Shown here: in pieces, positions 26,796 through 49,875 of the stretch
Layout: every line of letters starts with the position of its first letter
Position numbering within the stretch: the stretch's first letter is position 1
Assembly: GCF_026571515.1 (NCBI RefSeq)
Contig: NW_026867184.1
Span: 310,001-374,000 of the forward strand
Direction: 5' to 3'
Length of the DNA stretch: 64,000 bases
From: Ruditapes philippinarum
Taxonomy: Eukaryota
Notes under the pieces: model-generated
Seen by the model: only the letters and a program-made list of their open reading frames with translations
Told to the model about the DNA's origin: nothing
The model's database searches: none
Translations under genes and position numbers: made by a program

Positions 26796-27682
26796 TACGG
26801 AATGCCGTTAGGGCCATCGCCTATAAATGTGTTGATCTAAAACGCGATAGTCGATAGTACGATGGTGAAAACGCGAAATCACGAAACTACGATGGTGAAA
26901 ACGCGAAAGCACGATGATGAAAACGCGATAGTACGATGATGAAATCGCGACAGTACGATACTACGATGATGAAAACGCGATAAACTATCGTGTTTTCACC
27001 ATCGTACTGTCGCGTTTTCACCATCGTAGTTTCGTGATTTCGCGTTTTCATCATCGTACTGTCGAGTATCGAGTTTCAGACCAAACCATTCATAGGCGAT
27101 GGCCCTAACGGCATTCTCGAATGCGGCATTCTGGAATGCCGTAAGGGCCATCGCCTATGAATGTGTTAATCTGAAACGCGATAGTCGATAGTACGATGGT
27201 GAAAACACGAAATCACGAAACTACGATGGTGAAAACGCGAAAGTACGATGATGAAAACGCGATAGTACGATGATGAAATCACGAAAGTACGATGGTGAAA
27301 ACGCGATAGTACGATGATGAAAACACGACAGTACGATGATGAAAACGCGATAGTACGATGGTGAAAACGCGATAGTACGATGGTGAAAACGCGATAGTAC
27401 GATGATGAAAACACGACAGTACGATGATGAAAACGCGAAATCACGAAACTACGATGGTGAAAACGCGACAGTACGATGGTGAAAACACGATAGTTTATCG
27501 CGCTTTCATCATCGTAGTATCGTACTGTCGCGTTTTCATCATCGTACTTTCGCGTTTTCATCATCGTGCTTTCGCATTTTCACCATCGTAGTTTCGTGAT
27601 TTCGCGTTTTCATCATCGTACTATCGACTATCGCGTTTCAGATCAACACATTCATAGGCAATGGCCCTAACGGCATTCCGTA
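26796..27682. mobile_element. Tandem dimer of a fold-back MITE with a 22-bp minisatellite, IS3EU-like termini
   Basis: TIR TACGGAATGCCGTTAGGGCCAT / ATGGCCCTAACGGCATTCCGTA; 6-bp TSD AGTAAC at 26790-26795 and 27683-27688; internal ACGATG(G/A)TGAAAACGCGATAGT repeats; internal TIR junction at ~27090-27160. Confidence 0.8.
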
Positions 27683-30044: not shown

Positions 30045-30524
30045 TTAATGCAGTAAAACAGTATACAAATCGGAACAAAAGTATTTCAAAGTATCTTAAT
30101 ATCCTTGTTGATATTTTTGCAAAGCCTTGACCATTTGCATTAAAATAAACTGCAAAAAAAGAAAGAAAAAAGTAAGTTTAAAAGAATGGTAACACAGTAA
30201 TAACTGAACAACAGACCTTTCATATATTAGGCAATCACTTAACTGACTGTACTATTACGGATGTAACTACGAGCTATACATTAAGCTGGTGTGACTTTTC
30301 AAAGCTTAATATTAATTCTCGTAAATTCACGGACAGGACCGAAGTAAAATCGAATATTTCATTAATGTGTGTTGTAATCTTTTCATAATTGACATGTCAA
30401 TAAAAGCAGAGCATTTTGAGACATAGCCTCGACTACCATGTTAACGTTGGAGATAAGAAATTGAATACGTGACTGCATACATATATTACACTGATAACGA
30501 TACTTGTTTTCTATGATAGCTAAA

Positions 30525-33500
30525 ATGGAGGAAATACGCCAAAATATCAAGTGTAAAGATTACATTGCAGTTTTATATGGATTTGTACATACGGGTAGAA
30601 AAACGGAATCTTACACACGAGAAAGACTTCGTTTACTACATCAAAAGATATACAGATTGTTGGCAGGTCTTCCACGTTGTCATGCAAAGTGCAGCTCTCT
30701 CCATAAGTTACAATTTAACAGGTACGTACACGTCTTATATTATTGTTCACATACATATACGAATTTTATTTTGTTACTACTTTCGCGGAATTGTTTATAT
30801 ACATAAAGCCTAACTATATTAATCTCGATCCACCAAACTGTCCGCAATGAGGCAAAATTAAAATCGAAAGTAAATTTCAAGGTTAACATCAATGCTTTTC
30901 AGATAGCACCTATTCCCTTCCTTGACCAACATTTGGAGTCATTCCCAATATATTTTAATGTAAAAGGTAAGATGAAAATACATGTATCTCAATTCAATTA
31001 TCTTCATATGTAACCTGATAAAAATCTTATTCATGCTGATGCTATAATAATATTTCCATTCACAGATAACTAAATTTGACAATTCACCTTAAATCGTATT
31101 TATATTACATAGGATATTGGCCCACAATATGGTAGTCGAGAGGTAAATATTGTAAAAATAAAGACCATAACTAACTACAATTACAATTTTGACGAGGCCC
31201 AAATCAGACTCGACCTAAATCAGACTCAACCTTACACAGATTCCGTCATAAAAGATGTTTTCATTTGTTATCTAGAATATACAATATATGTGTTGCTACA
31301 GAAAAAAGAAGTCCTCAGTATTTGATGTATAAATTGCTTAAAATTGACAAATTAAAACGAAACTTACAAATCTGCTACGCCCTGTCTACCATAATCACAT
31401 GAGTGAACGAAAGCAGTCACGTGACCAATCACTAGCAGGTTTTAGAGGTATCATTGGCGTCCGCGCCGAAGCGCGACTCCCCTCATGGAATGAGAAAAGG
31501 CAATTGAAACTTCTCGGGCCTTTTAGTCGGTCATAACAGCCGATCATTCCGATTGGTATGAGAGTGTTTGATTTTTAAAAAAGAAATGTCGCGATATTTA
31601 CAATGAATAGCGAACTGGAGAATTTCGCAATGCAAACATATTCAAATGAAATAATCTTTTCCGTCAATTAATCACGCTCTTCGGAACGGTCACTCGTGTG
31701 GCGCTATGGTAATAAATAAGAAACTGGAGAATTTTGAAGGAAATGAAATGGAAACATATTCAAACAATTAATTGCATTCGTATAAATCTAGGCGTCCGCT
31801 GTGGGTTAGAATCCCGACAGGGACTTTGGATTCTTTCATATGAGGAAGCTATCCAGCTAGCTTACGGAACGTTGGTGGTTCTACTCAGGTGCCCGTTCGT
31901 GCCTGAAGGGCACCTGAGGTCTTCCTACACCAGTAAAGCTGGAACGTCGCAATATGACCTATATTGTGTCGGTGTGACGTAAAACCGAAAAACAAAACAA
32001 AAGCATGAGGTTTCTGCACGGAAATAAATATTTTTTCCAGCGCACGCACTTCGTAATTTTGATGTAAAATCTAAATAGTATTTCAAAGTAAATACAACAC
32101 ACAAAGAATCACTGATATAGTTTTCTATATACAATTCACTTAGATGGTTTCCATGGCGCGTTTGTTTAAGTAAATCCTGAATACGAATTTTGATTGCTGT
32201 AGATGAAATTTCAATATTATCTAATGTGATACAGTGTAGAGTTTGCATTCTTTGACCAGTACACAATGCTTATAACATTAACAATTCATAACTTAATAAT
32301 CTAAGTGATAAACCCTCTAACGGAAATATTGATTGAAGATAACACATAACAGTTTTATCATGGGATGTTCCCATGTACAATTGTATCTAGATAGAGATGG
32401 CCTTTTATCAGATATTCCTTTCATAAACTGCTTTATCAATATTTGGTTTCCAAATTATATGTTTGAAACTATATACATGTACACAGCACTAGAAATCGTA
32501 TTGATAGCACTATAACCTGATTTATGTTTTATTCTTCATAGTTTAAGGGACTTTTAAATAACTTGGCACAAATAGTCACAATAATAAGACGATATGTCAA
32601 GTACAACACCTGCACCCCTACCTCCAATGTCAAGGTCACACTTAGAGGTCAAAGGTTAACAGAGTCTGTTATATGGTATATTTTGTGTCCCATCCATAAC
32701 TTCTTCATAGATTAAGGGATTTTGTAAACACTTTGCACAAATAATCACAATAATAAGACGATATGTCAGTCACAAAATATGAGTCCCTACCTCCAAGGTC
32801 ACACTTAGAGGTCAAAGATTAACATAGTCTGTTATAGGGTATATTCTGTGTCCGATCTATAACTTCTTCATAGTTCAAGGATTTTGAAAATACTTGGCAC
32901 AAATAGTTACAATAATAAGACGTTATGTCATGCACAACACCTGTACCCCTACCTCCAAGGTCAAGGTCACACTTAGAGGTCAAAGCTTGACATAATAGAT
33001 TTTTAAATTCCATGTTTCATTTTATTTCTTAAATAAATTTATTGTTGCATTTGCAGATCTAGCATTGATCATAATTTTGGACTGAAAATCGTGAGATCCA
33101 TGCCTCAATCTTTTGAAATAGCATAATTTTATGCTTCATATAAAACTTCCCTGAGGCGGGGGACGTTGGTAACTCTGTTACAAATTCTTGTTCAGTTTGT
33201 TATTCCATTTCCATATCTATATCAAAATAACCATATATTTTTTATAATTTGGTTAAATATTTCAATGTCTAAACTCCATTCCATATCAACAGATAATTTC
33301 TGGCGGTATAGGGCGTCAGCTCTATCATTTAATTTTCCAGGAATGTGATAAGCACTTATCCAAATATTTTTGGATATACAACATTCTCATATATCTTTTG
33401 TCAATGAATTAATTTTTTCTGCCGCCGACCCCCTCCCCCATTTTCGTCAAGTGTGCTACATGTACATGTATTATTGTCGTTGTGTTATCTAACATTAATT

Positions 33501-36500
33501 GTACATTTTCATTTTCCTTGGCAAATCTTTTCAAAGTTAAGAGCGCGGCTTTTAGCTCAAGGTAATAAATATGTTGCACTTTGTCAAAGATATTGTTGCG
33601 TTCTTTGAATCTGCTTGTCACCTGCTGTCAGTTCTTTTTTTCGCTTGTTTATTTGACCAGATTATTTAGTTTACTTTCGGGACCTGAATGTATTAACATT
33701 TGTCTGGTATTTTTTTTACCCAAAAGCTCTTGTACTTCGGATGCTCTTTTTTTACGGTCGAGGCTATAACATTATGTACGCTTGGTCCACATTCTTCTTG
33801 TTTGGTACACGTTGCAGTTTCGCAAGTTTCCTGTCTGAGTGTGAAGACGCACTCTGTTTTTCTTCATTTGTTTACTTCTAGATGTCAAGTCACTTTCACT
33901 TCCCGAGTCTGACAAATCACCACGAGACGAAACTTCATCATACTTTAAGGCATACTAGTATTCAGATTTGTAAGGCTTGTTATTGCCGCTGTTTATTTTT
34001 CCAGTGAATTTTGTTGGTAAAGGCACATATGCTTTGTGTTTGTCGTAACTGTTCTTAAAATACGAACATCACTGGATCAATATTGTTACCTATAGGGGTG
34101 GCCGTATTTAATCCCGCCCCAAAAGAGATTTTCGGATCGATCGGAGGATTTCTATCCACGTGCTTCTTCCGGATGTCGATTCTTCAACAGCACTTCCGCC
34201 GGATGTAGTTGTTAACGTGACCGCCACATATCTAAAAACATTTAAGCGGGATTCATTTTGTCCGGCTGTCAGTTATCCCTTGGACTCCAGGTGCCTCTAA
34301 GAGCTGATTATTCTGAAGAGACCCATTTGCAGAAAAGTTTAACTCACTCTGCTTTTCTGGCCCTTCGACCATAATTGAACAAGTTTACACAGTTCTAATC
34401 ACAAAAAATCCAGCGAAATCGGAATAATTCACTACTTTATATGTTTATGAATGAGACACGATAGAGTAATTCCCTTTTGGTACCAAAAAGAAATAACACT
34501 TTCAACAGATAACAATCCTTAACTAGATAAAAACTATTATTTTTATATTCTTCGTAAAGCCACAAGTGGTCAGTTCCAAGGTAGCGTTGTTCTGCTAGTA
34601 ATTGGTCACGTGACTGCGTTCGTTCACTCGTGGGATTCTGATTGGTTGAAAGGGGTAGCAGAATGTCATGCTTTAAACCATATATGGTTTTCTAATCTGT
34701 GAAATCGATGAAATAAGACTCGTAGTTTGATGGATATTGTGGTCATTTATAATTTGATAAAGTAACACATTTGTACAAGTTTGCGTATAATATTATGCTT
34801 TATTTTAAAATAATACATTTAAAAGAAAGTTCATAATATGACAAAAAGTTGCAAAACTGCATAAATCATATATTTTTCATTCAGACTGATATAGATCAAT
34901 ATCCCACCCACTAATGGTTAAGAAAATAAACCACTTTTTTAAAATTTTCATTAAGGTGCCAGGATTTATTCTACAATTAAGCTGTATAATTCACCTAATA
35001 CAGACACTTTTCCTTTTTATATGCCCCCCCTTCGAAGAAGTGGGGGTATATAGTTTTGCTAATGTCTGTCGGTCGGTAGGTCGGTCGGTCATTCTGTCCA
35101 TTGGTAGACCACATGGTTTCCGCTTACAAACTATTTATCACAAAGTCTTTATATTTCACATACATATAAGTAATAATAAGTAGATGACCCCTATTGATTT
35201 TGGGGTCACTAGGTCAAAGGTCAAGGTCAAAGGGTCCTTAAACGTCAGAATGGTTTTTGCTGATTATCTTGAAAACTATTCATCATAAAGTCTTCATATT
35301 TCAAGTACTGATTTGTCATAACTAGTAAATAAACTTATTGATTTTGAGGTTTCTAGGTCAAAGGTCAAGGTTACAAGGGCCCTAAATGTCAGAATGGTTT
35401 CCGCTAATTATCTTGAAAACTATCAATCACAAAGTCTTTTATATTTTACTTACTGATTGATCATAACCTGTTGATGACCCCTATTGATTTTGGGATCTTT
35501 ATTTCAAAGAACAAGGTCACAGGGGCCTTAAATGTCAGAATGGTTTCTGCTGATTATCTTGGAAATTATTCATCACAAAGTCTTCACATTTCATAAAATG
35601 GTTGGTCATAACTAGTAAATGACCCCTAATGTTTTTGAAGTAACGATGTCAAAGGTCAAGGTCACAGGGCTTTGAATGGTAGCATGGTTATCTTGAAAGC
35701 TATTTATCACCAAGTTTTCATATTTCACATACTGATTGGTCATAACTAGTAGATGACCCCTATTGATTTTGGGGTCACTAGGTCAAAGATCAAACTCATA
35801 GGGGCCTTTAATGTTAGAATGGTTTCAACTTTTTTTCTCAAAGTATTTATATTTCACATACTGATTGGTTATAAAAAGTATGTGACCCCTATTGATTTTG
35901 GGGTCACTAGGCCAAAGGTCAAGCTCATAGGGATCTTAAATATCAGGATAGTTTCCGCTGATATAGATCATGACAACTATTGATCAAAAAGACTTCATAT
36001 TTCACATATTGAATAGCCATATGAGCCGCGTCACGACAAAACCAACATAATGGGTTTGCGACCAGCATGGATCCAGACCAGCCTGCGCATCCGCGTAGTC
36101 TGATTAGGATCCATGCTGTTCGCTATCAGTTTCTCTACTTGTTATTGGGTCTGTAAGTGAACAGCATGGATCCTGATCAGACTGCGCGGATGCGCAGGCT
36201 GGTCTGGATCCATGCTGGTCGCAAACACATTATGTTGCTTTTGTCGTGACGCGGCTCATATGTAGAAGATGACCTTTTGATTTTGGGTTAACTAGTTCAA
36301 AGGTCAAGGTCATCGGGGCCTTAAATGTAGATATGGTTTCAGCTTATTACCTTGAAAACTTTTTATCCCAAAGTCGTCATATTTTAGATATTTATTAGTC
36401 ATAATGGGGTCATTAGTTCAAAGGTCAAGGTCTTTATATTTCACATACTGTTTGGTTATAAATACATGTAGTAGGTCATTATTTTTCTTTTTTCCATAAC

Positions 36501-39500
36501 TGAACACTTCCACGTACCCATTTATGGCAAGTTTCTGTAACAAATTACCAATGATGTGAGTCAAAGGCAAGAAAGGGGGTATATGTGTCGTCCGACATTT
36601 TTTGTTTTTAATTACAATTTGTCCGTTGTTCATCGGCCGTCTGTGCGTCCGTATTCAGTTTATTACAAACGAATTCTCCTCATAAATACTGGGCCAATTA
36701 ATTAACTAAATTGTTCAAATGGTTCTGCTCCATTTAACATCTGGGACAGAAATGTAAAATATATAGATATTTACATCTGCATTTTTCTCAAGTTCTATAG
36801 GTCTAAGACAAGGCGAGAATTTATCGCCGGTGCTCTTCTCAATCTACCTAAATGCCCTAGAGTTAGCCCTTAATAAGGACAATAATGGAGTCACATTTGA
36901 CGCTACAACCCAGTTTTTAAAAATATTAATATTACTATATGCAGACGACACGGTCGTAATAGGCGAAAATCAGGAATCATTCCAGTCCTGTCTCAATGAT
37001 TTTCACAAATATTGCGAGGCTTGGAAATAAAATATAAACTTTCAGAAAACTAAGGTAGTTGTCTTTGGCACAAATAAACCCAAGTCATACACTTTCAATA
37101 TAAATGGTCAATCAATCGAAACAGTAACGGAATATAAGTATCTAGATGTTATTTTCTCTAGCTCTGGTTCATTTCTTGCGTGTAGGAAACACCTAGTTTC
37201 ACAAGCAAACAAAGCCATGAATGTTCTATATATGAGAATAAACAACTTTGACCTTCCCTTAGACCTACAAATAAAGTTATTCGACCATACAGTGCTTCCC
37301 ATTCTTACATATGGAAGTGAAATATGGGGGTTCGAAAATTTAAATATCATAGAACAAGTCCATTCCAATTTTTTACGCAAGATTACTAATACCAGAAAAA
37401 GTACTCCTAGGTACATGTTATATGCTGAACTTGGGCGCTATCCTATCGAAATAAACATCAAATCTCGTATGATAAATTTTTGGAATAAACTTATTCAGTC
37501 TAAGGAATCAAAAATTTCATTTATGTGTTACAGGTATATGATACAGTCTAGTTAAAAGTATACTTAACTGTACAGGTAATTCTATTTTATGGTTAAATCA
37601 AAATAATATCCAAGCTAAATGTATTAACAAATTGGTTAAACAAACATTAATCGACCAATATAAACAAGAATGGTTCTCACAACTAGAAAACTCGCATAAA
37701 GGTAGACTCTATGGTAGTTTTAAAAACAGTTTTAATCTAGAATATTATTTAAATATTCTCCCCCACCCCCTTAGATTATCTCTTTTGCATTTCCGAACTG
37801 CTAACCATCGTTTCCCAGTAGAAACGGGTCGTTGGAAACAATCTTTTAAACATCATGAGCAAAGAAAGTGCCAAAAATGTAACTCGGGGGACATTGGCGA
37901 TGAGATGCATTATCTGTTAATATGCCATTTTTTCAGAACTAAAAGAAGACAGCTAATACCAGAGAGATTCTATATTAGACCAAATATACTGAAATTTAAG
38001 ACACTACTTAACACAAATGATAGCCAGACCCTAACAAACCTTAGCTTATATGTTAAATATATCATGAAACAAATTAACGATTGATAACAATTACATGAAC
38101 TGATTTATTTTACATACCTGGTGATTGTTAATCCTTATTATCCCCATCTTTGACTACTGTATGTTCACTGACTTTTTCCTTTTTTTATTGTTGTTAGCAT
38201 ATTAAGAACTCAAAACTTTGTTTTTTCACCGCTTTCAAATAAATACTTCAAATATTGTCCGCTTTCCCCATCGAATACAGAAACACTAAAACACAAAACA
38301 TAATTAATTAGAATATTTTTGATCATGTGGTTACCCATACTAATTATTTATGCTACTGTTCGTTCACATGTTATTGCTTGATACATGTTAAATGTGTATT
38401 ATGTAATCTGTGACAATTGAACATGAAGTGATTTGTATTGTATTGTATTGTATTGTATTGTATATCTTAACATTGAATAAAGTTTGAAAGTAAATATTGG
38501 CATCGTTCCAGGAAATCATTGATTTTCCTTATATGTATATAGTAAAACCTTAAAGATATTTCTTCTCTTAAAGTACAAGAGCTAAAGGTTTGTTTTTGAC
38601 ATGAAACATTATCAGTTAGGACTCTACTAATTTGCTCCAATTATAGCATTGGGTTAAATTGGCCACGTCCCAGGGAATCATTGATTTTTCTTATATGTGT
38701 ATTATATGTGTATAGTGAAAACAAAATTTATCTTCTTCTATTATACTACAAAGGTTTAACCTTGAAAAATTGGTATATTACATTGTCCGGTGGACCTTTA
38801 CAAAAAAATATTTAAATTATAGGCCTTAGGTCAAAATTGACCCGCCCCCAGGGGGTCATTGATTTTCCTTATATGTATATCGTATAAACAAACAAAAAGT
38901 CTTCTTGTAAAAAACGAAAAAAATTAGTGCTAAGATATTTAGCATGAAAAATCTTCTAAAAGGTGTCTATCAAGTTTGTTCAAATAAAAGCCCTGGGGTC
39001 AAAATTGGCCCCGCTCCATATGTATATAGTAAAACCAAACAAAAAACTTATTCTCAGAGTCTTTAACTTAGATATTTGGTATGAAACATTGTGTAGTTGA
39101 TCTTTACCAATTTGTGTTCAAATTATATCCCTGGAATAAAATTTGCAAGTATAAAGAAATAACAAAAAACTTCTTTTACTATGCTAGAGAGACTTTAGCT
39201 TAGATATTTAATGAAACATTGTCTAGTGGACCTTTAGGCCTCAAGGGAATCATTGATTTTCCTTCTATGTTTATAATAAAAAACATAAAAAATCCAATGA
39301 TACTGTAGAGGCTTTATCTTAGATATTTGGTATGCAACATTGTCTGGTTGACCTCTACAAAACTTTTCAAATAATAGCCATCAGGTTAAAATTTGCCCCG
39401 CCCCGGAAAAACATAGATTTCCTTATTTGAATGTAGTAAAAACCTTTTTTAAAAATCTTCTCTAATTATACAAGAGCTAAAGCTTAGTATCCATAGCAAC

Positions 39501-42500
39501 CTGTGACTTTATAGCAACAGCAACCAGTGACTTCCATAGGAAACATTAACTTTCCATACCAACCAGTGAATCTACCATTGAATTTCTTAGCAGGCACTGA
39601 CTTCCAAGGAAACCATTTACTTTGTATAGCAACCAGTGACTTTTTATTTTACTGTTATTTTCCCTTAGCAATAGCAATCAGTAATGTTATTACACGTATA
39701 CTTTTTCAGATACAAATATGAACATTGTGACAGTTTATGATTTAGATTTTATATCTGCTTTGGTTTGTAGTTTACATTATTACTTGTAAAGAGAGTATTC
39801 ATATTTAAGTGAGCGATATTAAGGCCATCCTGGCCCTTTTGTTTGTTTTTCTTTTCTGTTTTAAATCTGGCCAACGTCATCATGATTGGTAAGATATTCT
39901 TATTTGTGATTATTTCTTATTGACTCCTGTATTTCGTTGGCTTGAAAGTTTGATTGTGTGGCAATATGTTGAACTTTTTTTCAATGTTAAATCTTGTTCA
40001 CGAATAAATCAGACCTTTCACTTCTTTGAGATGCGGTGTTTGATCAGTTGGTCACGAATCATATTTTCTTTGGAAAGAATAAGTATGTAAAATCTCCCAA
40101 TGTTTGAGTCATCTTGACGTATTTTTGGTATGAAAATATCTTGTAAAAAATAAGAACAAAGATAAACAAGGCACAGAACACAGCCCCGACACAATCCAAA
40201 AACAACAGCAAGGCATGGAGAAGGCACCGAGCCAAAACCGGGAGAAGACACAAGGGTGGCAAAATGAGGGGACATGTAATAAGTGAAATGCTTATAATTA
40301 AAAGGGGCGGATAGACAAGGGGCGTAAGGAAAACATTTGTGGTTGGGGAAGAGAAAGGGACATGGCACAAAATGTAATAAGAGGGACCCTCCACAATGTA
40401 ACTTTCGTTTTTTTTTCTTGTTATGCCAGCTACTTGTATATAATAGTCAAATCGTTTAATATAATTGTCCCATGCACTGGACAAGTGTGCATTTGCCCGT
40501 CAACTTTGAAAGTCTGTGGCGTTGGCAGTTCCGAAGATGCCATCTTGAAAAAATTATAAAAATCCTTGATTCTTGTAAATAGCCACAAGTCCTCTTGAAA
40601 TAATTAAACTATTAAAAAGTATGATCCCATCATTATCGATCAAGTGAAACTCAATGGAATTTTGAGAAAGCATATCACTCAGATCTGTCCATTTTATCGA
40701 AACTAAACTGTCAGACCCATTCTCAATGAAAACAAACTAACCGTGACCATTATACTATGAAAATTTAAGACATCAGGAAATGATCACTTTCGACTATATA
40801 ACAATAAACGTTATTATTCATTCAAACTTCTAGAGAAAACATTAATATTGCTATTAATCAGTGTAACATATAATTTCTACGACTGTTTACAAAATATCTA
40901 AATTTTATTTTTATATAGGCTTTCTTGGTAAACGTTCGTTTACTTTTATTTACAAAGGACATGTCAGATTATGTAAATGATTATTATGCATTCGTTCCAG
41001 GGATTTTGAGCAGTTGTTTAAAAGTCCTAAAAAAGATTAAACTTCTTTAACATCTTTTAGGGCCGATGTATTTAGCACTGCCATATTCTTTTCATCATGT
41101 GACATGAGTACATTATTTAGCCAATAAATGTGATGGTGGCATTGCAAAAATCACATTTACTTTTGTTCATCGTTAGGTTTTTATCTCTAAGGTGGTGTAG
41201 GACATTGCGCAGCGTGGCGTTTTGTTGTTCTTTTTTAAATCATGTACCTGTATAAAATCTGAATTCTTTGTTTGCAATTCGGTTGTCTTGAAGTGTATGT
41301 TGAATTCAGGTGTTGGTATATGTCTTGATATAGGGGACTCTTGAAATGCACGGACGGGCAGCTAAGGTCATCCTCAAACTGTAAAACTGGAAATTCGCCA
41401 TTTGATTTCTACGTTACCACCCCCACCCCCTACAAAAAAAACAAATACAGAGTATAAATCTGAAGCACAGAAAATTCTAAATATAATTCGAATATATAGT
41501 CCATAGTTTGTAACAAATGTTGTTGTTTTCTTGATTGTGGGTCGATCTCTATCTGATATACTCCATGTTTAGGCCTATTTATGTGAATAATCCGGCTCAA
41601 CTAAGTTCTTCCAGTGTTTCGTAAATGCTCAGCATGGAAAAATCGTTCACGTTCAACTGCTGTGTTTTCTTGTCTCGTGTCTACACAAATTCTTATGTCT
41701 CAATTGCTTTCAGAAATAATTTAGCGGGGTGGCACCAATGGTGTATTATCTTCAACTTTTTCTATGACATCAGAGTTTGGTAGTTAGTTTTATTTTTTCT
41801 CAGATGTGTCGCCGAATTTTAAAAGGTGACAGTCTAACAGTGCAATGGGCTTAACATCTTTGTGTGTTGTATATGTAGCTGTAATCTTTGAGTTTCCCAA
41901 TACTTAAAATCGATCATTAAACTCTGAATGTTTTTATTTGGAATTTGTTTCAAAATATAGGTAATTCTGGATCAACACTTCAGTTTGCTGTCCTAAAAGT
42001 GGTGTACATTCTACATCAGTGATGTGAAACGTTATTTTTGTTTTTATTAACCAGATTTTCCGAAGAAAAAAACTGGTTATTGGATTGAGGTATGTCGGCG
42101 GGCGGGCGTAAAAAAGTTCTTCCGAGCACAACTCCTCATACATTTCACAGAAGCTTTGTCAACAAGTGCCCGGCGCATATTATCGGGGTTTTGTGATTTG
42201 ATAATATTTGACCTAATTATGCCCCTGTCCTTTTCTTATATAGATTTCTTCAGGAATTTTGACCAAACTTTCACAGAAGCTTTGCCATCAAGTGTCCTGG
42301 CGCATATTATCGGGGTTTCTGATTTGATAATTTTCGACCTAATGATGGTCCTTTTATGGAATATATAGTGAACAATTCCTTCTGTGCGCAACTTCTTCTT
42401 TAATTCTCAACGAATAAGATATTTCAATTAAACTTGATGTAAAGCTTATGACAAGACCTTGCTTTGGATTGCTTTTGGGCCCCTTTGGGTCACGGTCATT

Positions 42501-45500
42501 GTTACTAAAATTAGAAAATCAGTTTCCGGGAATTGGTTAAGTTTGGAATGAGATATTTCAATGAAACTTGGTGTATTGCAAGTTTATGTAAAGCCTCGCT
42601 TACGATTGCTTTTGGGCCTGATGAGTCAATGTCACTGTTACTAAAAAGGGAAATTAGTTTATGGTCAATAACTAGAGTTTGAAATGAAATATTTCAATGA
42701 AACTTGGTGTAAAGCAAGGTTATGTAAAGACCTTGCTTACGATTGATTTTGGCTTCCTGAGTCAAGGTCACTGTTACTTAAAATATAAAATCGGTTTCCA
42801 GTCAGTAATTAAAGTAACTTGAATGAGATATTTCAATGAAACTTGTTGTATAGAAAGAGCTTATGTGAAGATTTTGCTTGGAAATGCCTTTGGATTCCCT
42901 ATGATCAATAAAAGGTCATAAGAAATAGAAAATTTGTTTCAGGTCTAGAACTTGATTAAGGAATGAGATTTTAATTCCTCTTGAATATTATTTCTACAGT
43001 ATTTGAACGCTTCAATTAGAATTGCATTTTAACCCCATAGGGTTATTGCCATTGTTTTAATGCCAAAGCTAAACTGCACATAGCTTGTATTTATATTCCA
43101 ATGACAACAGTGCATTCAACAGTGGTGGTTATTGAAAACCTGGTTTCGTGGCTTTTTTCATTTTCATTTCTGCGATTCCAAAAACATTCAAAGCTTATTT
43201 TAAGCATATTGGTATATCTTGAAATGGAATTTGTTTAGAGATGTAGATTTTGTTTCACTTTTTCAAAGGTTTAACGATTTAGACAATTGACACTTGCTCC
43301 AGAATGTATCAGCAATTTACATTTAAGAAGTTAATTGTATTGTTTCCAGCTATGTAATTGTTCTATATCATTCTTCGACCTTTTTTAAGTCAATTTATGT
43401 GAACTTCAGTAAATGTTTTAGAAATGTGGTAGACTAATTGTTCTCATGTTAATAGACTATGTCAAACAAATTCTTTTTTTCAGATGGTGTGAAACTTGCT
43501 CAAAGTGGAAAAAAGAACTGTCGGGGGTAAATAGATCAAGGAGTGTAAATTGGGAGAAAACGGAATCATGGAAATGGCCTGACTCTTATGAAAGCATTGT
43601 CGAAGTATTCCTGCCGGGTGACTGGACAAAAAGCAATCCCATACAGTTTTCAGATATATCAACACAGTGTCATATTTGGCTGCAATGTAGGGAATTTCAC
43701 CTGAATAAAACAATAGTTAAAAACGTTAGAGCTGCAAGAAATGAAACATATCATAATATTAGTTTTGAAGCCACTGATATTGAAAAGGCCAAAGCTTTTG
43801 ATGCTTTAAAAGATTTGATAAAAGATAAAGACATCGCAAACGACATTAATGTGAATGAATATTTAAGCAAACTGGATGATATTTATGTGGATGATTTATT
43901 CTATTCCATTGACAAATCTGTACTTGAGGAAATAACAGCTGTATATCATGAAAATCAAAGATCATTAGAACACACATTAAGTGAAATATGTGACCACTTA
44001 GAATCTATAGAGGTGGAAAACAGATATTCTGGTACGGTGTTAGACAGACTTTCAAGGAATTTTAAAAAAAAAGATTCGAAGAGAAGGAAAACAACACCTT
44101 TTACAACTCTTGCGCTTACGTTTGCATTTTTAGGATGTGTATGGTATTATTTTGTACCAAACCACGTATCGTTGAAAGAGTATCATTCTCAAGGTCTAGG
44201 TAAAAATATTCAATTAACTGACGCTTTCTGTTTTTAGTTAAATAAATTAGTATAGCAAAATAAAGGACATTACTTTAAATGATTTGCTAATAACCATACT
44301 TGAAGGGTGTTTAATATGATTACACCTGTTGAAGATTGTTTTTATGCCTTCCAATTCTAAGAATGCTTTCATATATGGGTCGGTTGGTCCGCCGTTCTTC
44401 CGTTAGACCATACCTTGTTCAAACAATGAAGGAGTTGGCATGACTTGTAAGTATAATATCTGATGATTGCGATATTGATATGTCAAAGGCAGGTACAGTC
44501 ACCGTAATATTGACATCAAACTGTTGTTATACTAATCATAAAATAATGCGTTGACCTTCAGATAAAGAAAGGAGATTAGGAGATTAGACGCGACATTAAG
44601 ATACCTTTCATAGATTTTTTTGTTTAAGACGACCGAGATAAAGGTTATAGAACACTTTAATACAGCAAATTCCTTGGAGAGTATGAATTTGACAGGTTGA
44701 AGGATATGTTTAAAATAGAGATTACAATGCTTTACACGACAAAAGCCGATTTACAGTTATCAGATTATGAATTGTGCATGGTTAAATGTCTCACGGGGTC
44801 ATATATGTGTAAAGCGATTCGCAAGACAAGATAGAGGTACACGCAAATATGTTGAAAATAAGTACAGAAAAATTATAATAATATATTAAAATTCTGGCCT
44901 AGGATTTATCGAAATGTTGAAACATTTACAATTTCTTAATGTAATTGTTGACTTTTACTTTTTGCAGACGGATGTGTCTATGAAAACTATACTTTGCCTT
45001 GGATGCAAGATTTACCATTAATAGAGTACGTACGAGACACTAACACTTTAGTTGGGAGACATTGGCTGTTTAAAATGTTAGATAGAAAACTTTTACAAGA
45101 CGAATCATCTGGACGCGGAATAGTCTCTGTTGCAGAATTCGGGTACGGAAAGTCGGCCATAGTTTCCCATTTGCTATGCGCCAGACATGGTGAAAAGGGC
45201 AGAACTTTAAGGGAACACATAGCTGCGTTTCACATATGTAAATACGATGTTTCTAGCACGCAGTCACCCGAGAGGTTTATCAGGCGTTTAGTAGGGTTAT
45301 TTGCAATGAGACTACCGGAATACGGCAATATTGTTTCCATGATGTCCAGTTCCTCTATTTTATATGACAAGGAAAAATGTGCTAAGGAACAAGATGCGTG
45401 CTTTGATCAGGCGTTTAGAATTCCATTTAAAAATATGACATCAGAATATTCTACAATGATTGTGGTAATAGACGCTCTTGATGAATGTTTTCACTTAACA

Positions 45501-48500
45501 AAAAACGAAAATTTTATTTTGAATTTGATATCGACACGACTACGATATTTTCCAAAGTGGGTCAAATTTCTCATAACAAGTAGAGACATAATGCAACTGA
45601 AGTTCTCTAAAAAAAACTAGAGAGATTAAATCTTTTAGCTAACGACTCGACCAATTTCACAATATTCAAAAAAAAAAAAAAAAAAAAAAAAGTATATTGA
45701 AAAGTATTTGAATATTTACAATGAAAAGTCACGATTTTTTTATTCTGATATAAAACAGAAAATACTGGAAAGTGGTGAAGGCAACTTCCTGTACATTATT
45801 CATGCATTGCAATATGTTCAGAGTCCTGACTTTAATGGCAAGTTGCCTAAGCTACCATTTTCATTAGAGGATATATATGAACTTAATTTTGATCGACAAT
45901 TTCAAGGAGGTAATACCTACAGTAATGCTAGACTTATTCTCGAAATTATTTGTACAAGTTTAACTCCTCAAAGTAGAAACGATATATATGACATACTAAT
46001 AAATAGTGAGGCAATCAACATATCATATAAAGATTTTGAACGGGAATTTGAACAACTTTCTTACTTTATAAAGGCGGAAGATGGCGTAATTTTACGCCAT
46101 AAAGCAATACACAGTTGGTTAGTTAATTCAGCCTCCAGCAGATATAAAGTTTCCCTTACAAAAGGACATGAATTAATTTCAAAACATTTGCTTAGAACTG
46201 TGGAGAACAACGGCACTGGTGATATTATTGCGCTAGTAATTCATCTGAGTAACTCAAAAAGTGTTACTCTGCAAAAGACATTTCATTCATTCAATATGAA
46301 TAAGGTGATGTCTTTCAGAGAGAAGGAAGTTCTACATAATCTAATAAGTAAGACTGAGTCTGAAGAAGCGCTTGATTTACTTCTATTTCATCATTCCAAA
46401 GTTGATATAACAGATGAAAATGGAGTAAGTCCGGCATTTCTCGCAGCAGCGAAAGGGCATCTTAAACAGCTAAAATTGTTGCTGCGGAAAGGTGCAAACT
46501 GTGATTTTGCAGTGAATCCTTGTAGGAAGTGTGATACAAAGCTATTTCTACGCGATTTCAAAAAAGATATAGAAGAGATAAAAACAATTTTCTATTCTGG
46601 TTATGGACTTCTTCACATAGCAGTACAGCATAGATCTACAGAAATTGCAAGATATTTGATTGAAGAAACAAGCATTTCTTTAAATCTTGTAAACGTTATT
46701 GGGCAGCGGCCAATTGATATAGCTTGCGAGATGGGAAATATTGATATATTGAAAATATTTATGTCTAGAAAGTCAAATATAATTGACGACAATTGTTTGT
46801 ATTTTGCGTCCAAAAAAATTCACATTTTAATATCGTTAAACAAATTTAGACTCAGGATTTAAACCGAGTTGCATATCCAACAGAACTGCTGAAAGGGAAT
46901 TAGGTAAAATAATGAAATCGTGTAACTGCGACGCCTCGCCTTTAGACAATCTGATAAAACCTTTAGACACATGGTGGATTGTCTTTCGAGAAACCTCACT
47001 TCATTATGCGATTCGGTCTGGGGACTCACACATCGCAGAATATATTGCAAAAAAGACGAAGCGTTTAGCAGAGTGTGTTGATTCGTATGGTTATACACCT
47101 TTCTTACTTGCGATCAAGCATGGAAGATACCAGCTTACTAATGGCATGAAAAAAAGAGCAAATATAGATATCTGCTCTTCCTCTGCTTCATTTTTATCTC
47201 GTCAAGACATCGCCGGTTCCGGTACTATAATTGATGAGAAGAGGGAAGATATTTGTCAAGAAGGTGCAACATTTGCCCATTTAATTGCTAAATACAATCG
47301 GGTTAAAATGATTGACCTTTTTGAAAATGACGTCACTCTGAAATGGAATATAGCAGATAGTTCTGGCAATAAGCCTATACACTATGCAGCTAGTCACAGT
47401 AGTACGGATTTCATCAAGTTCATGTCCTTGAAATTCGGAAGGACTGCTTTTGAGGAAGAGTCAAAAAATAAATCAACGGCGTATCATTCTGCAGCAATAA
47501 GCTGTTCAGAGGCGAGTTTAAGGGCACTTACTAATGCATTTAGTGATAATTTAATAGATTTCAAAGATAATTGCAATAGGAGCGTATTGCATTATGCTCT
47601 CATGTGCGAGGCTAAGAGCTGGTCGAACTTTCCTCAAAATAATCTAACCCTGCGTTGTCAAAAATATTTACTAAAGCTAACAAATATATCACATGTTGAT
47701 TGCAATGAGCAAAATTTACTTCATTATATCGTTATGTATGGGCACGAAAAACTGCTTCATTATCTTCAGAAAATGAAACCAAAGCAATACAAACAAATGC
47801 TACATTCAAAAAATCGATTAAAGTTAACTCCAGTCGAATACATTTTGTATTATGCACCAAATGATGAGATTTTGTTCTCATCTACTGTTTTCAAACAATT
47901 CAGTAATGAAAGCATAAATACACAGTCTTGGGAAATACGACGGTCGTTGATCCCATGGGAAAAATGTTTAATCAATATTCAAAAATTATTTACGCAGGAG
48001 GAGACCAAAGAACTTCTTTTAGAATACTTCTATGCTATTCTTGTTAAAAGCCCGTTTTTGTCGAAAACTCTTTTACTTAATCGTGTTTTTGCAAATATCT
48101 CGTTTATTGAGGCCTTAAATATCAAGGGGCATATAATTCATGGTATGTTTTGGGCAAAACAGTTCAAACGTGAGCACATTTTTCAACAATTATTAAAGAT
48201 AATTTCCGATGACAATCCCACGCTACTTTTCAGTTGTGGGCAACCTCTAATTCGTTCTCCTTTGCATTATATTGCATTCTCTGCTCCTTGGACTTACAAT
48301 GACACATTGTTTGATGTTATCAATAATACCTTTGCTGTAGGAAGACGCATTAAGAATTTGAAGTGCAGTACCATAGATGGATTTAACCTTCTTCACTACT
48401 CTATTATTGGTGGTTTTATAAACCTTACGGATTTTTTAATGAAAAAGAAATTATCTTTGGTAACTCAAAATGTTTCTGTTGTTGATATACTTTATATGAC

Positions 48501-49875
48501 TGTGTTTGCGAAGTTTAAACCGTATATTTCTAGTGATAAATTAGTTACCTATTCTCTCCTTGATAGATTTTTATCGGATTTCATTAGAGACAGAAAATCG
48601 GATTTGAATGCAAATGTCTTCTGTAGTAACCATTCTAAGGGTTTGTCTTTAGTGCATTTCTTCGCTATAAATGGAATGGCAAGAACAATAGAAACAGTTA
48701 AGAATTTATTTGGGGGTGAAATAACACAATGTCGAAACGTTCATAATTTTACTGCAATGTTTTTTGCCGAGTTGTTTGGCAGAACAGCGGTCGAATCTTC
48801 ATTACCAAAGGAAAATTCTTACATTTTCCCTGAGAGAAGTGCTGTAGAATTTCTTTTACTCAATATCTATAATAACTTTCCTCAAATGAGGAAACAGAAT
48901 CCTTTCCGTTGCATTACTTTAAGGAGAATGATCACCATGAAGGATAGAGCACTTATTAAAAACTATCAATGTCTAAAAGGATTTTATTATATGTATTTTA
49001 TGACTGTTAACGATTTCTTAATTCATAATCTCGTGTTTGCAAGAGAAGGCTTACACTTAAGTGAAAAACTTATGCTACAGTATCTAGAGATAAAAAAGTT
49101 GTTCTATGCCTCTTTAAAAAGTGAAATTATATCAAACTGTAGTAGATTTACCCGATACCTAAGTGAAATCATAAAGATACTTAATGAACTAAAACTTTGG
49201 AGTGGTATAAGTAATGGGTATCTTTCCTGGCAAAGTGAGTATGATTTTTTGAAAAATATATACAATGCATTAGATTTACCCTACGATAAAAGTATGATTT
49301 CATTAGTACAAGATGGCATGAATAGTGATTGTTCAACTTTTAATTTTCGACATATTTGGAACACAATGCAATATCTGGAAAGAACTCTTAGGACAGTAGT
49401 TCAGAATGTTCAAGATATTACAATTTTGGTGGCGCTTTTGGACCAAAAAGATTTCATAAGAATTCAAAGTATGCCACCTGGGTTTAATGGTTTACAGCCG
49501 CATTTTCAAGACTTTGTGTGTGGATATAGATTTTCCTTATGCCATGGATGCCCATTACGTTTATTGAAGGGAGCAGTAAATAACATAAATCGTTTTCGGT
49601 ACCTGAACGTTATTAAATCAACTACTACATACAAACATATTGATGGAGTGAGACTTAGAAGTAGTCCAATGTTTATGAGCAAATCTGAAGTTACTAGGCT
49701 AGAAAAGAAACGGAAATTCATATACAAAATGATGCACAAAACAAAGAAAAGGCAGAAGTGGCTATTAGGAAACTTCAAAAGTGAAAGAAATGGGATTTGT
49801 AAAAGCCAAACTAGCAATGAAAATGAAAGATATAAAAAGAGTTTGTTATACAATATTAGGATACCATTGATTTAA
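30525..49875 (+). CDS. CXorf38-like (HEPN-type) domain - TM helix - NACHT NTPase (TANC/NPHP3 type) - ankyrin repeat protein, ~1,940 aa; frameshifted in this assembly
   Basis: Coding exons 30525-30721 (phase 2), 43484-44199 (phase 1) and 44968-49875 join in frame at canonical GT-AG sites. Motifs: CxxxC..CxxCxxWK, W..W.WP, RNETYH; TM FTTLALTFAFLGCVWYYFV; VGRHWLF, Walker A AEFGYGKS, AFHIC, Walker B IVVIDALDEC, FLITSR, SGEGNFLY; ankyrin repeats (G.SPAFLAAAKGH, LLHIAVQH, TSLHYAIRSGD, GYTPFLLAIKHGR, GNKPIHYAA). Indels at A-runs near 45609-45691 and 46812-46847. Confidence 0.85.
31790..32003 (+). mobile_element. tRNA-derived SINE with a Meta-type core, 5'-truncated, inserted in the DIRS relic
   Basis: B-box-like GGTTAGAATCC, core GAGGAAGCTATCCAGCTAGCTTACGGAACGTTGGTGGTTCTACTCAGGTGCCCG, tail GTGTCGGTGTGACGTAAAAC + (AAAAC)n. 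Family assignment is from recognition of the core sequence. Confidence 0.8.
32525..33000 (+). repeat. ~160-bp tandem repeat array (3 copies), HINE/satellite-related
   Basis: GCACAAATA.TCACAATAATAAGACG.TATGTC..CCCTACCTCCAAG(GTCAAG)GTCACACTTAGAGGTCAAAG repeated. Confidence 0.85.
35012..36607 (+). mobile_element. Helentron/HINE-like element with ~130-165 bp central tandem repeats
   Basis: TTTTTATATGCCCCCCC..stem..(GGTC)n head; >=7 units of TGACCCCTATTGATTTTGGGGTCACTAGGTCAAAGGTCAAGGTCA; 3' AAGGGGGTATATGTGTCGTCCGACATTTTTGTT. Confidence 0.85.
36022..36258. mobile_element. Nearly perfect palindromic MITE nested in the HINE array
   Basis: ~100-bp arms TGAGCCGCGTCACGACAAAA..GCGACCAGCATGGATCCAGACCAGCCTGCGCATCCGCG and their reverse complement; TA on both flanks. 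Confidence 0.9.
36608..39843 (+). mobile_element. Second HINE-like element, interrupted by a LINE
   Basis: Head GTCCGTTGTTCATCGGCCGTCTGTGCGTCCGT; ~170-bp units CCCAGGGG.TCATTGATTTTCCTTATATGTATATAGT.AAAAC from 38500-39480; CCATAGCAACCAGTGACTT minisatellite; 3' GTGAGCGATATTAAGGCCATCCTGGCCCTTTTGTT. Confidence 0.7.
36795..38488 (+). mobile_element. 5'-truncated, decayed RTEX-like LINE
   Basis: GLRQGENLSPVLFSIYLN, LLYADD, PILTYGSEIWG, AELGRYP, FRTANHRFPVETGRW..CQKC..GDEMHYLLIC; in-frame stops; (ATTGT)n and AATAAA 3' end. Confidence 0.9.
40390..40542 (-). mobile_element. Possible Gypsy gag N-terminal relic
   Basis: MASSELPTPQTFKVDG../..SAWDNYIKRFDYYIQVAGIT resembles Gypsy gag starts; short and frameshifted. 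Confidence 0.45.
42041..43165 (+). mobile_element. Helentron/HINE-like element
   Basis: Sub-TIR AACCAGATTTTC / GAAAACCTGGTT, (GGCG)n microsatellite, 4 units of GAGATATTTCAATGAAACTTGGTGTA..GATTGCTTTTGG. Confidence 0.75.

Follow-up and report, generated by a model that had tools for sequence, protein, structure and literature searches.

Whether one clam gene can join a predicted RNase to a STAND-type sensor through a membrane helix, and on which side of the membrane each half would lie, is the question raised by a locus of Ruditapes philippinarum. The window, that is, the whole 64,000-nucleotide stretch of DNA analysed, had been read in an earlier note as encoding a single protein of about 1,940 residues, with a HEPN domain in the cytosol, one transmembrane helix and a NACHT-ankyrin module in the ER lumen or outside the cell. 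The gene is here considered to be probably one copy in a bivalve-expanded family of membrane-anchored STAND (NLR-like) HEPN-NACHT-ankyrin proteins.

Gene structure

RNA contigs from three studies showed that the HEPN, helix, NACHT and ankyrin exons form one spliced gene (Table 1). The 8396-nt contig of run X15 aligns in two blocks, 43481-44197 and 44966-49349; a GT..AG joint lies between them, at 44199/44968 once a 2-base shift is applied to the alignment. In the X1, X2 and X15 contigs the letters 5' of 43481 match window positions 30689-30718 uniquely, and this match together with the shared CAG fixes 30721, followed by GTACGT, as the donor of exon 1. The exon phases at the two joints give ...LQFNR/WCETC... 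and ...SQGL-D-GCVYENY.... Both junctions of the earlier note were thus right: contigs of all three studies join exon 1 to exon 2, and the 8.4-kb X15 contig joins exon 2 to the NACHT-ankyrin exon, which argues against an origin of the HEPN/helix and NACHT exons from different genes. Retention of intron 2 leads to an in-frame stop at 44235-44237; inside this intron X1 has low coverage and an alternative joint from 44446 to 44968.

Exon 1 encodes the first HEPN helix and the first two Zn-ribbon cysteines, and its N-terminus aligns with those of relatives P0002 and P0034. The absence of a signal peptide was borne out, as exon 1 has no hydrophobic N-terminus (its best 19-residue window reaches a Kyte-Doolittle (KD) value of 0.22) and in-frame stops precede the candidate ATGs. 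Intron 1 contains a reverse-transcriptase (RVT_1) fragment at 36830-37030 and tandem repeats at 32532-32963, 35128-35955 and 42412-42871.

Table 1. Features of the gene in window coordinates
Feature	Position	Strand	Basis or remark
Exon 1	30513..30721	+	ATG 30513 or 30525; donor CAG/GTACGT; X1/X2/X15 contig ends
Intron 1, 12.8 kb	30722..43483	+	bounded by RNA-contig junction
Exon 2: HEPN core, coiled coil, basic cluster, hydrophobic helix, short linker	43484..44199	+	RNA contigs, Pfam
Predicted HEPN catalytic motif RNETYH (Rx4H, N after R)	43737..43754	+	family alignment
Basic cluster RNFKKKDSKRRK, N side of helix	44055..44090	+	sequence; family N-flank bias
Hydrophobic helix FTTLALTFAFLGCVWYYFV, candidate transmembrane segment	44100..44156	+	KD 1.64
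Intron 2, GT..AG	44200..44967	+	skipped in X15 contig
Exon 3 start: juxtamembrane motif, then NACHT P-loop domain	44968..45620	+	Pfam, RNA contigs
Disrupted stretch: A24 run 45668-45691 and imperfect short duplication, frame break	45650..45713	+	three-frame translation
AAA lid, TANC1-type winged helix, first ankyrin repeats	45708..46862	+	Pfam
Long ankyrin solenoid	46912..48862	+	AlphaFold2, Foldseek
C-terminal helical region, about 335 residues, stop 49873-49875	48863..49875	+	frame open throughout

Domains and gene family

The proposed order within one gene holds: HEPN comes first, a coiled coil and the basic cluster lead up to the hydrophobic helix, and the NACHT follows it, with about 20 ankyrin repeats and finally a helical tail. 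The N-domain matches Pfam DUF4559 (CXorf38-type HEPN) at 3.6e-12, and exon 2 has 110 relatives in the representative library. Across 43 aligned family N-domains the R and N of the RN....H motif are invariant and the H is at least 90% conserved. The structure model of this domain is confident (pLDDT 93.6). Its comparison with the yeast Swt1 HEPN, among the best and widest-coverage matches, gave Z 6.1 over 120 of 136 residues and that with Csm6 gave Z 5.0, both lower than the noise that helical bundles produce; Foldseek with the same model returned zero matches, and a weak HEPN_Swt1 Pfam match (1.1e-4) was found in one relative. The N-domain is accordingly best read as a CXorf38-type HEPN with a Zn ribbon and a predicted RNase, an assignment that shares the good probability given to the overall explanation.

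Walker A (AEFGYGKS, 45132-45155) and Walker B (IVVIDALDEC, 45459-45488) were found intact, as had been noted. The P-loop domain matches Pfam NPHP3_N (TANC/NPHP3-type NACHT, 3.8e-16), the winged helix HTH_TANC1 (2.8e-15), and the 45708-46862 region also Ank_2 (7e-16). AlphaFold2 modelled the solenoid with pLDDT mostly 70-92 over residues 20-650, and its best Foldseek matches were ankyrin-1 and AnkB 24-repeat structures (E=4e-13 to 8e-12, 650-780 columns); the repeat count given above includes the repeats that precede it. The C-terminal region is predicted to be helical, with pLDDT <50 and no recognised fold.

At least 22 paralogues are present in the R. philippinarum genome, where HEPN/helix exons (26 matches) and NACHT exons (24 matches) lie consecutively on the same 14 contigs. 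The giant exon is open for 1600-1680 residues in at least nine genomic copies, and the juxtamembrane motif GC.YENY.LPWMQDLPL that opens exon 3 marks the same start in 24/24 paralogous exons. Relative P0065 also carries GT4 and TRADD-N domains. Judged by sequence comparison, the family is expanded in bivalves (venerid clams) and also occurs in a sea anemone.

The hydrophobic helix and its flanks

Among 29 distinct NACHT-bearing relatives from Ruditapes, Mercenaria, Mya and Nematostella, 27 carry the helix, 61-89 residues before Walker A; by this homologue check it is a family trait, conserved at the sequence level between sea anemones and clams. Its KD lies at 2.3-3.1 in the majority of paralogues and orthologues, and most relatives have it as a single span of 20-27 uncharged residues. 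The window gene and its two closest paralogues constitute a weakly hydrophobic subclade (KD 1.33-1.64), in which the NACHT remains 87-93% identical while helix hydrophobicity has eroded; the helix of the window gene itself (KD 1.64, naive Hessa sum +0.5) is marginal. The basic N flank proved to be a property of the family, with a mean of 4.2 K/R against 2.0 on the other side, net charge +2.4 against -0.7, and more K/R on the N flank in 22 of the 29 rows (3 ties). Under standard topology rules this charge bias assigns N-in/C-out. In the non-bivalve members P0065, P0067, P0095, P0099 and P0107 there are two hydrophobic segments, and a short, very basic loop lies between them.

State of the window allele

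The window copy has at least four frame breaks (45604/45609; 45650-45713; 46812-46818; 46846) within 1.3 kb, which the earlier note had taken for a few homopolymer indels. At every one of them in-frame RNA alleles exist. The extra bases at 45604 and 45609 are absent from the X1 and X15 contigs and from one X22 read. In 45650-45713 X15 lacks a net 29 bases and has one extra base at 45713, which restores the downstream frame, and the unmatched end of X1 also differs from the window there. The window has A7 at 46812-46818, where X1 and X2 have A5, and lacks one C at 46846; its frame then stops at 46860-46862. The frame is intact at both sites in X1 and X2, whereas X15, only 3 substitutions away from the window, has the window's state at both and the same stop. 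Because this near-identical RNA haplotype keeps the 46812/46846 break, the window allele is probably truncated and the copy broken; the single protein of the earlier note thus holds as one spliced gene but probably not as the product of this allele.

It is slightly more probable than its opposite that the locus is a pseudogene allele, with transcripts that would be carry-over of a dead copy and an architecture that would inform on the family only. The density of breaks points that way, given that paralogues of the same assembly keep their giant exons open, from which a generally low rate of assembly indel error follows; so do the X15 haplotype and the A24 run with a short duplication inside a coding exon. 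Against it, none of the RNA contigs that cover 45604/45609 or the A-run region, X15 included, bears out the window's breaks there, which may be assembly errors; X1 and X2 provide in-frame alleles at the remaining two sites, the 987-codon frame downstream remains open, and the X15 transcript is abundant (word depth 37). Expression was low (depth 0-5) in one raw RNA run, in which many reads came from paralogues or other alleles.

Topology of the two halves

A cytosolic HEPN is strongly indicated, since a signal peptide is absent and the helix comes only after some 250-340 residues of N-domain (about 800 in one GT4/TRADD-N member), which would have folded before the helix leaves the ribosome. By sequence rules the NACHT-ankyrin half would be exoplasmic (type II), a placement held only tentatively. 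The matching receptor model, with HEPN and coiled coil in the cytosol, NACHT-ankyrin in the lumen or at the surface, and ligand- or nucleotide-driven clustering that dimerises HEPN across the membrane in an IRE1-like manner, is possible though somewhat less probable than not. The charge bias and the single strong span of most relatives favour it, and a precedent is an echinoderm NLR whose NACHT is claimed to be extracellular (PMC13133943). Cysteine is the most conserved residue after the helix (12 of 37 invariant in 10 proteins of 17-45% identity; 18 columns conserved in at least 7 of the 10); the conserved ones include one that follows the helix by 8-25 residues and those in loops listed in the earlier note, which are invariant, and C945 and C968 are lost jointly in two proteins. 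Yet a further 10-24 cysteines after the helix in each protein are not conserved, six of ten totals are odd and the content of 1.7-2.6% is that of intracellular proteins, a pattern that fits a reducing compartment. Over the family, forward sequons exceed reversed ones after the helix (278 against 179) but not on its N side (151 against 144), with a Fisher p of 0.01 on non-independent sequences. This excess is confined to the winged-helix (2.1-fold) and first ankyrin (2.2-fold) blocks, being weak in the tail (1.17) and absent from the NACHT block (0.97), and the sole sequon conserved in 9/10 proteins is NGST of the ankyrin consensus. The roughly 19 sequons once offered as lumenal support came to 17 in the translatable pieces of the window gene, which is chance level against about 13 by shuffling and 15 for the reversed motif. 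The outward NACHT therefore keeps the charge rule on its side, but sequons and cysteines do not discriminate.

NACHT NTPases and ankyrin repeats are, with almost no known exceptions, cytosolic or nuclear, which speaks against the type II placement, as does the erosion of the helix in the window subclade beside a well-kept NACHT. The alternative, nearly an even bet, is that both halves are cytosolic and the helix is a peripheral, hairpin or other non-standard anchor, or is buried until activation and then inserts into the membrane, resembling the released helices of BAX, MLKL and the ZAR1 resistosome. Every recognisable domain is of cytosolic type (HEPN with Zn ribbon, GT4/TRADD-N of P0065, NACHT, ankyrin), the variable free cysteines are numerous, the paired segments of the non-bivalve members could put both halves on the same side, and weak helices are tolerated in the window subclade. 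However, SRP would normally recognise a strong mid-chain helix of 20-27 residues, which would then enter the membrane as a type II anchor, and in most bivalve members the helix is too short for a hairpin. The very basic loop of the paired segments suits a cytosolic position with a single true span after it better than a translocated hairpin, and a docking site for the helix is without evidence.

Relation to known systems

The closest published system is the CXorf38-type HEPN fused to NACHT and ankyrin repeats, described in 2013 by Anantharaman et al. with a proposed immune, RNA-degrading role and Nematostella among its taxa (PMC3710099). The likeness covers the DUF4559 match, the RN....H motif, the Zn-ribbon cysteines and the NACHT and ankyrin partners; molluscs are unlisted there for this family, and a membrane helix between HEPN and NACHT goes unmentioned in the accessible text (PMC3710099). 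The clam family differs by its venerid expansion and its helix. Bivalve HEPN-NACHT expansions of the DZIP3/hRUL138 type with haplotype variation are known from the pearl oyster, and share the N-terminal HEPN on NACHT, the lineage-specific tandem arrays, the haplotype presence/absence and the broken copies; their HEPN is PF18738 instead of DUF4559, their repeats are LRR, TPR or WD40, and a membrane helix is unreported (PMC9646362). TANC1/TANC2, NPHP3 and ANKRD50-type STAND NTPases likewise have the NPHP3_N P-loop and HTH_TANC1 winged helix followed by helical repeats, but are soluble cytosolic scaffolds without HEPN effector or membrane helix.

Membrane-bound NACHT proteins have also been published: anthozoan NLRs with 3-4 N-terminal TM helices (PMC3879445, PMC5094078) and the sea cucumber AjNLRC4 and AjNLR-new (PMC8699970, PMC13133943), the latter reported with its NACHT outside the cell (PMC13133943). 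They resemble the clam family in joining NACHT to transmembrane segments and differ in helix number and placement, in their gap-junction-like TM bundle or Ig partners, and in lacking HEPN and an ankyrin solenoid. The view that no characterised receptor has such a layout was thus overstated (PMC3710099, PMC3879445, PMC8699970, PMC13133943). IRE1 and RNase L (KEN-type) are HEPN-superfamily RNases activated by induced self-association; IRE1 couples its sensor across a membrane, and RNase L senses through ankyrin repeats. The clam protein differs from both in having no kinase or pseudokinase, another HEPN family, an N-terminal rather than C-terminal HEPN and a STAND NTPase switch, and IRE1, a type I protein, has a dedicated lumenal domain, so that the likeness is one of logic, not of family.

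Proposed mechanism

Counted against the membrane-anchored family explanation are the low hydrophobicity of the helix in the window subclade, the frame breaks, the low read depth and the sub-noise structural similarity of the HEPN. Given how STAND and HEPN proteins are known to act, a likely mechanism can be proposed in which the ankyrin solenoid would bind a pathogen- or damage-derived ligand, upon which the NACHT would exchange nucleotide and oligomerise. N-terminal HEPN domains, carried on a coiled-coil stalk, would then meet on the cytosolic face of the membrane to form a composite Rx4H RNase site, and cutting of RNA would lead to translational arrest, antiviral RNA decay or cell death. What the family adds to the published fusions is the near-universal helix between HEPN and NACHT in its NACHT-ankyrin members; if that helix inserts on activation, membrane damage or localisation would be added to the RNase output.

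Gene structure and splicing

The window DNA is AT-rich (GC about 0.33) and contains no N. All five open pieces from which the earlier note assembled its protein were found on the + strand in the ORF listing of the window. Profile searches were run on each exon or open piece separately, and full-length questions were answered from natural full-length relatives. RNA was mapped over 43350-49349 with Logan contigs of three sequencing runs and one raw RNA-seq run.

Open pieces and frame breaks of the HEPN/NACHT-ankyrin gene
Feature	Position	Strand	Observation
Open piece 1	30504-30806	+	ORF listing
Open piece 2	43446-44237	+	Pfam: DUF4559, 3.6e-12
Open piece 3	44994-45620	+	Pfam: NPHP3_N, 3.8e-16
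Open piece 4	45708-46862	+	Pfam: HTH_TANC1, 2.8e-15; AAA_lid_TANC1 sub-threshold; ankyrin repeats
Open piece 5	46912-49875	+	Pfam: ankyrin repeats
Frame break	45604 and 45609	+	Two extra bases, absent from runs X1 and X15 and from the only covering read of run X22
Frame break	45650-45713	+	A24 run and imperfect short duplication
Frame break	46812-46818	+	A7 in the window, A5 in runs X1 and X2
Frame break	46846	+	Extra C in runs X1 and X2

A contig of 8396 nt from RNA run X15 aligns to 43481-44197 and 44966-49349 and leaves out the 768 bases between them, which have GT..AG ends; this is exactly the junction 44199/44968 that had been proposed from the sequence. This joint between exons 2 and 3 is of phase 1 and reads ...SQGL-D-GCVYENY.... 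The possibility that the HEPN/helix and NACHT exons belong to separate genes is ruled out by this spliced 8.4-kb contig. Upstream of 43481, contigs of X1, X2 and X15, which come from three separate studies, carry identical letters; these occur once in the window, at 30689-30718, directly before CAG/GTACGT at 30721. Exon 1 is therefore spliced to 43484, and the product reads ...LQFNR/WCETC.... The ATG at 30513/30525 is preceded by in-frame stops, and no hydrophobic stretch was found in exon 1. With the N-terminus complete and exon 1 free of such a stretch, the protein has no signal peptide, as had been claimed.

The X1 contig also shows a minor joint from 44446 to 44968, with thin coverage of 44150-44549 that extends into intron 2 (44200-44967). 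If intron 2 is retained or partly retained, the frame would end at 44235-44237, and a tail-anchored product of HEPN, coiled coil and helix with a 27-residue tail is possible. Short members of the representative protein library were considered as true tail-anchored forms, but most of them stop where exons 2 and 3 meet or continue into intron sequence (P0001, P0003), and they were therefore not taken as evidence for such forms.

Several other features lie near or within the gene. A reverse-transcriptase ORF of 406 residues (RVT_1, 9.9e-34) is located upstream at 24388-25608, and intron 1 contains decayed RT fragments (36830-38084) and three arrays of tandem repeats whose units recur every 129-162 bases. 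On the - strand, at 27166-27564, an ORF of 132 residues built from repeated SRFHHR(T/S)..(V/I)FSSSYYRVF units is probably a translated tandem repeat; it lies within 26001-28000, where the GC content of the window peaks (0.43).

The HEPN domain

From its profile matches and motifs the N-terminal domain is a CXorf38-type HEPN domain with predicted RNase activity. Exon 2 alone matched PF15112 (DUF4559/CXorf38) with 46.8 bits against a cutoff of 27 (E = 3.6e-12), and scores of its relatives, 110 of which were found for exon 2 alone in the 50%-identity representative library, reach 7.9e-31. The Rx4-6H motif of the window is RNETYH at 43737-43754, with N after R; in 43 aligned N-domains the R and N of RN....H are invariant and the H is conserved in at least 90%. 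The C..C and C..C pairs of a Zn-ribbon are invariant or nearly so (positions 52, 56, 68 and 71 of relative P0004), and in the window they correspond to CHAKC in exon 1 and CETC in exon 2. PMC3710099 describes Zn-ribbon cysteines inserted in the CXorf38-family HEPN domain, and there Anantharaman et al. proposed antiviral RNA cleavage for HEPN domains of this type.

The AlphaFold2 model of the N-domain of paralogue P0007 has a pLDDT of 93.6. Foldseek searches of the HEPN-domain model against the PDB returned zero matches at E <= 0.001. By VIA-align, the Swt1 HEPN structure 4pqz ranked fourth (Z 6.1, 120/136 residues) and Csm6 reached Z 5.0; neither score rises above the noise level stated for helical bundles, although both agree with the 2013 "Swt1-like" placement. 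A weak HEPN_Swt1 Pfam match was seen in one relative. Two-copy structure prediction of P0007 HEPN residues 1-205 gave scores of 0.01 and 0.09, which speak neither for nor against dimerisation.

The NACHT, winged-helix and ankyrin half

By its profiles and motifs the P-loop part is classed as a STAND NTPase of the NACHT clade, of the NPHP3_N/TANC type. Walker A (GYGKS, 45141-45155) and Walker B (IVVIDALDEC, 45459-45488) are both conserved in paralogues, and every paralogous copy carries the motif C.SE.Y..PF.QDLPL.GY at the start of the NACHT exon. NPHP3_N scored 60.2 bits (cutoff 24.8) and HTH_TANC1, the winged helix after the P-loop domain, 56.9 bits (cutoff 27), while AAA_lid_TANC1 stayed at 15.3 bits, under its cutoff of 29.1.

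The sensor half consists of about 20 ankyrin repeats in both open pieces together (Ank_2, 8.4e-21 in Pfam). Structure prediction of the 987-residue open frame gave a helical solenoid over residues 20-650, with pLDDT mostly 70-92, followed by a helical, low-confidence C-terminal stretch of ~335 residues. The best Foldseek matches of this frame were 24-repeat ankyrin-1 and AnkB structures (E = 4e-13 to 8e-12), with E = 4e-13 over about 650-690 columns. Canonical NLRs carry C-terminal LRRs, whereas the window gene carries ankyrin repeats instead and is NLR-like in layout only.

A hydrophobic helix conserved between HEPN and NACHT

The window helix, at 44100-44156, is marginal, with a KD of 1.64; the values are 1.33 and 1.36 in the two closest paralogues and 2.3-3.1 in nine others. 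Conservation of the helix in homologues, on which the earlier note depended, was found: a hydrophobic span lies 61-89 residues upstream of Walker A in 27 of the 29 distinct proteins among the library matches that also carry Walker A. The remaining two are a fragment of 307 residues and P0094, a protein of different architecture with HEPN, a classic NACHT and LRR-like repeats. Most uncharged spans measure 20-27 residues, and no second conserved span was found in bivalve members. Basic residues are concentrated on the N side, with a mean of 4.2 K/R in the N flank vs 2.0 in the C flank and net charges of +2.4 vs -0.7; charge is more positive on the N side than on the C side in 22/29 rows, with 3 ties, and the window has 7 K/R within the 12 residues before the helix. 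The sequence of the helix varies, and what is conserved is hydrophobicity and position only. Reading the segment as a buried core helix was dropped because of this pattern, which is that of a true membrane anchor.

Where bivalves have one hydrophobic segment, five non-bivalve members (P0065, P0067, P0095, P0099 and P0107) have a pair, with a strongly basic loop of 9-10 residues in between. The pair could form a hairpin that leaves both halves in the cytosol, or its first segment could be an interfacial helix and its second the one true span. Ahead of HEPN, P0065 has GT4-conflict and TRADD-N domains as well.

Orientation in the membrane

By textbook topology rules, the lack of a signal peptide, a folded N-domain and a basic N flank give an N-in/C-out protein. 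The folded N-domain before the helix comprises about 250-340 residues, and about 800 in the GT4/TRADD-N member P0065. The type II topology of the earlier note therefore stands by these rules, but the sequence proxies for a sensor outside the cytosol conflict with one another. No residue after the helix is conserved nearly as strongly as cysteine, which is invariant at 32% of positions vs 20% for G and <=6% for most others. Eighteen cysteine columns are kept in at least 7/10 proteins, including one 8-25 residues past the helix and the four loop cysteines singled out earlier, and two cysteines are lost together in two proteins. Against this, each protein carries a further 10-24 cysteines past the helix that are not conserved, the cysteine content of 1.7-2.6% is like that of intracellular proteins, and several of the "conserved" cysteines are ordinary buried ankyrin positions, e.g. 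LH.AC..GH. The notion that all cysteines are paired was rejected, as post-helix totals are odd in 6/10 proteins. In the family, N-x-S/T exceeds the reversed motif after the helix (278 vs 179) but not before it (151 vs 144); however, the excess is limited to the winged helix (2.1-fold) and the first ankyrin block (2.2-fold), with 0.97 in NACHT, and the sequon common to 9/10 proteins is the NGST of the ankyrin consensus. The window gene itself has 17 sequons vs 15 reversed motifs, with about 13 expected. The sequons offered earlier in support of a lumenal sensor thus fail to provide it, being at chance level in the window gene and regionally uneven in the family, and their counts were rejected as a decisive topology proxy. 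The two hydrophobic segments of the five non-bivalve members also count against an outside sensor.

Since modules of the NACHT and ankyrin types are hardly ever known outside the cytosol, two placements of the sensor are weighed almost equally. A type II protein with its NACHT-ankyrin sensor outside the cytosol is a serious but tentative reading. A cytosolic sensor, with the helix serving as a non-standard anchor or inserting on activation, has a probability approaching even. The remainder falls to other arrangements, such as insertion followed by retrotranslocation, as is known for NFE2L1. It is possible, though less likely than not, that in all members, whether of sea anemone or clams, a STAND NTPase and an ankyrin solenoid of 20 repeats lie outside the cytosol, in the ER/endosome lumen or at the cell surface, and signal through one helix to a cytosolic HEPN RNase. 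If true, an NLR would here have become a transmembrane receptor that works by IRE1-like logic.

State of the window allele

Three-frame translation and RNA comparison revealed four disrupted places in the window gene. Without the extra bases at the first break, the frame reads ...QLKSLKKLERLNLLANDSTNF..., in agreement with the paralogues. At the second, X15 is net 29 bases shorter, with one base more at 45713; by length arithmetic, as distinct from the contig letters, it would be back in the downstream frame after the A-run region. The unmatched end of the X1 contig there reads ...TATTGAAATA/ATTTAC, i.e. YIEIIY, resembling the YIEKIY of paralogue P0034. Within this coding exon, at 45668-45713, the A24 run and an imperfect 9-10-base duplication (TATTGAAAAG / TATTTGAAT) form a stretch at which RNA contigs break or differ.

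At the last break, X1 and X2 read ...KNSHFNIVKQILDSGFKPS..., a good ankyrin repeat. X15, with only three substitutions from the window over about 5.1 kb, is identical to it at 46812-46818 and 46846, and in that state the frame ends at 46860-46862. The giant exon is open for 1600-1680 residues in at least nine paralogues of the same assembly, and the assembly is therefore not riddled with indels. We read the 46812/46846 break as a real allele whose product stops after the first ankyrin repeats, and take it that other animals express intact alleles; the breaks further upstream would reflect more decay of the window allele or else local assembly errors. On this reading, the locus offers a clean example of intact and broken immune-gene alleles segregating in a bivalve.

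An X2 contig has one extra A in the A9 run at 44064-44072, the codons for KKK in the basic cluster that immediately precedes the helix. With a low depth of 9 here and a contig end 26-34 bases past the run, the extra base could be an error or another frameshift allele.

Family distribution and genomic arrays

Named members come from Mercenaria mercenaria (many), Ruditapes philippinarum, Mya arenaria and Nematostella vectensis; the family predates the cnidarian/bilaterian split. Over about 710 residues, RefSeq proteins named Ruditapes philippinarum match paralogous loci of this assembly with 100% identity. In the clam genome, HEPN/helix exons gave 26 matches and NACHT exons 24; the two kinds share one set of 14 contigs, where they lie about 1-1.5 kb apart and often in tandem arrays. 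Seven contigs of the Ruditapes philippinarum assembly G000 (C3904, C12990, C3171, C1185, C6892, C5236 and C14343; family loci L002-L036) hold arrays of 2-4 copies each, mixing broken copies with intact ones whose giant exon is open for 1600-1680 residues. The closest paralogue lies at C3171:17549-21120; identity to it is 80% over HEPN and 93% over NACHT, and its frame stays open for 1628 residues.

Proposed mode of action and relation to known systems

NLR-type switches are textbook cytosolic sensors, and the behaviour of STAND switches and HEPN RNases is well established. By analogy with these, the most likely mode of action is that a ligand would be bound by the ankyrin solenoid, nucleotide-dependent oligomerisation of NACHT would follow, the coiled-coil stalks and HEPN domains would be gathered at the cytosolic face of a membrane, and a composite Rx4H site would then form and cleave RNA. 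The domains and their order are observed, and every step of the mechanism is inferred. In IRE1 and RNase L, a kinase or pseudokinase directly precedes a C-terminal KEN, whereas HEPN of the window gene is N-terminal; no kinase match was found by Pfam in any searched piece of the gene.

The novelty claimed for this layout survives in part. The HEPN-NACHT-ankyrin fusion of the CXorf38-type family has been known since 2013 (PMC3710099). Bivalve HEPN-NACHT expansions with haplotype variation were already known (PMC9646362), membrane-bound NLRs were reported in anthozoans (PMC3879445, PMC5094078), and a membrane-bound NLR of the sea cucumber and, in a 2026 paper, a claimed extracellular NACHT have been published (PMC8699970, PMC13133943). 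The literature search found no account of a conserved single helix between a CXorf38-type HEPN and a TANC-type NACHT-ankyrin module, nor of a CXorf38-HEPN-NACHT-ankyrin family expansion in clams.

In conclusion, a conserved membrane helix separates the predicted RNase effector from the NACHT and ankyrin sensor in a clam and anemone family. If the sensor lies outside the cytosol, the family would be a new receptor class and would lend independent support to the recent "extracellular NACHT" claim; otherwise, the fate of a strongly hydrophobic mid-chain helix would differ from that expected under current topology rules. Either topology would be new biology.
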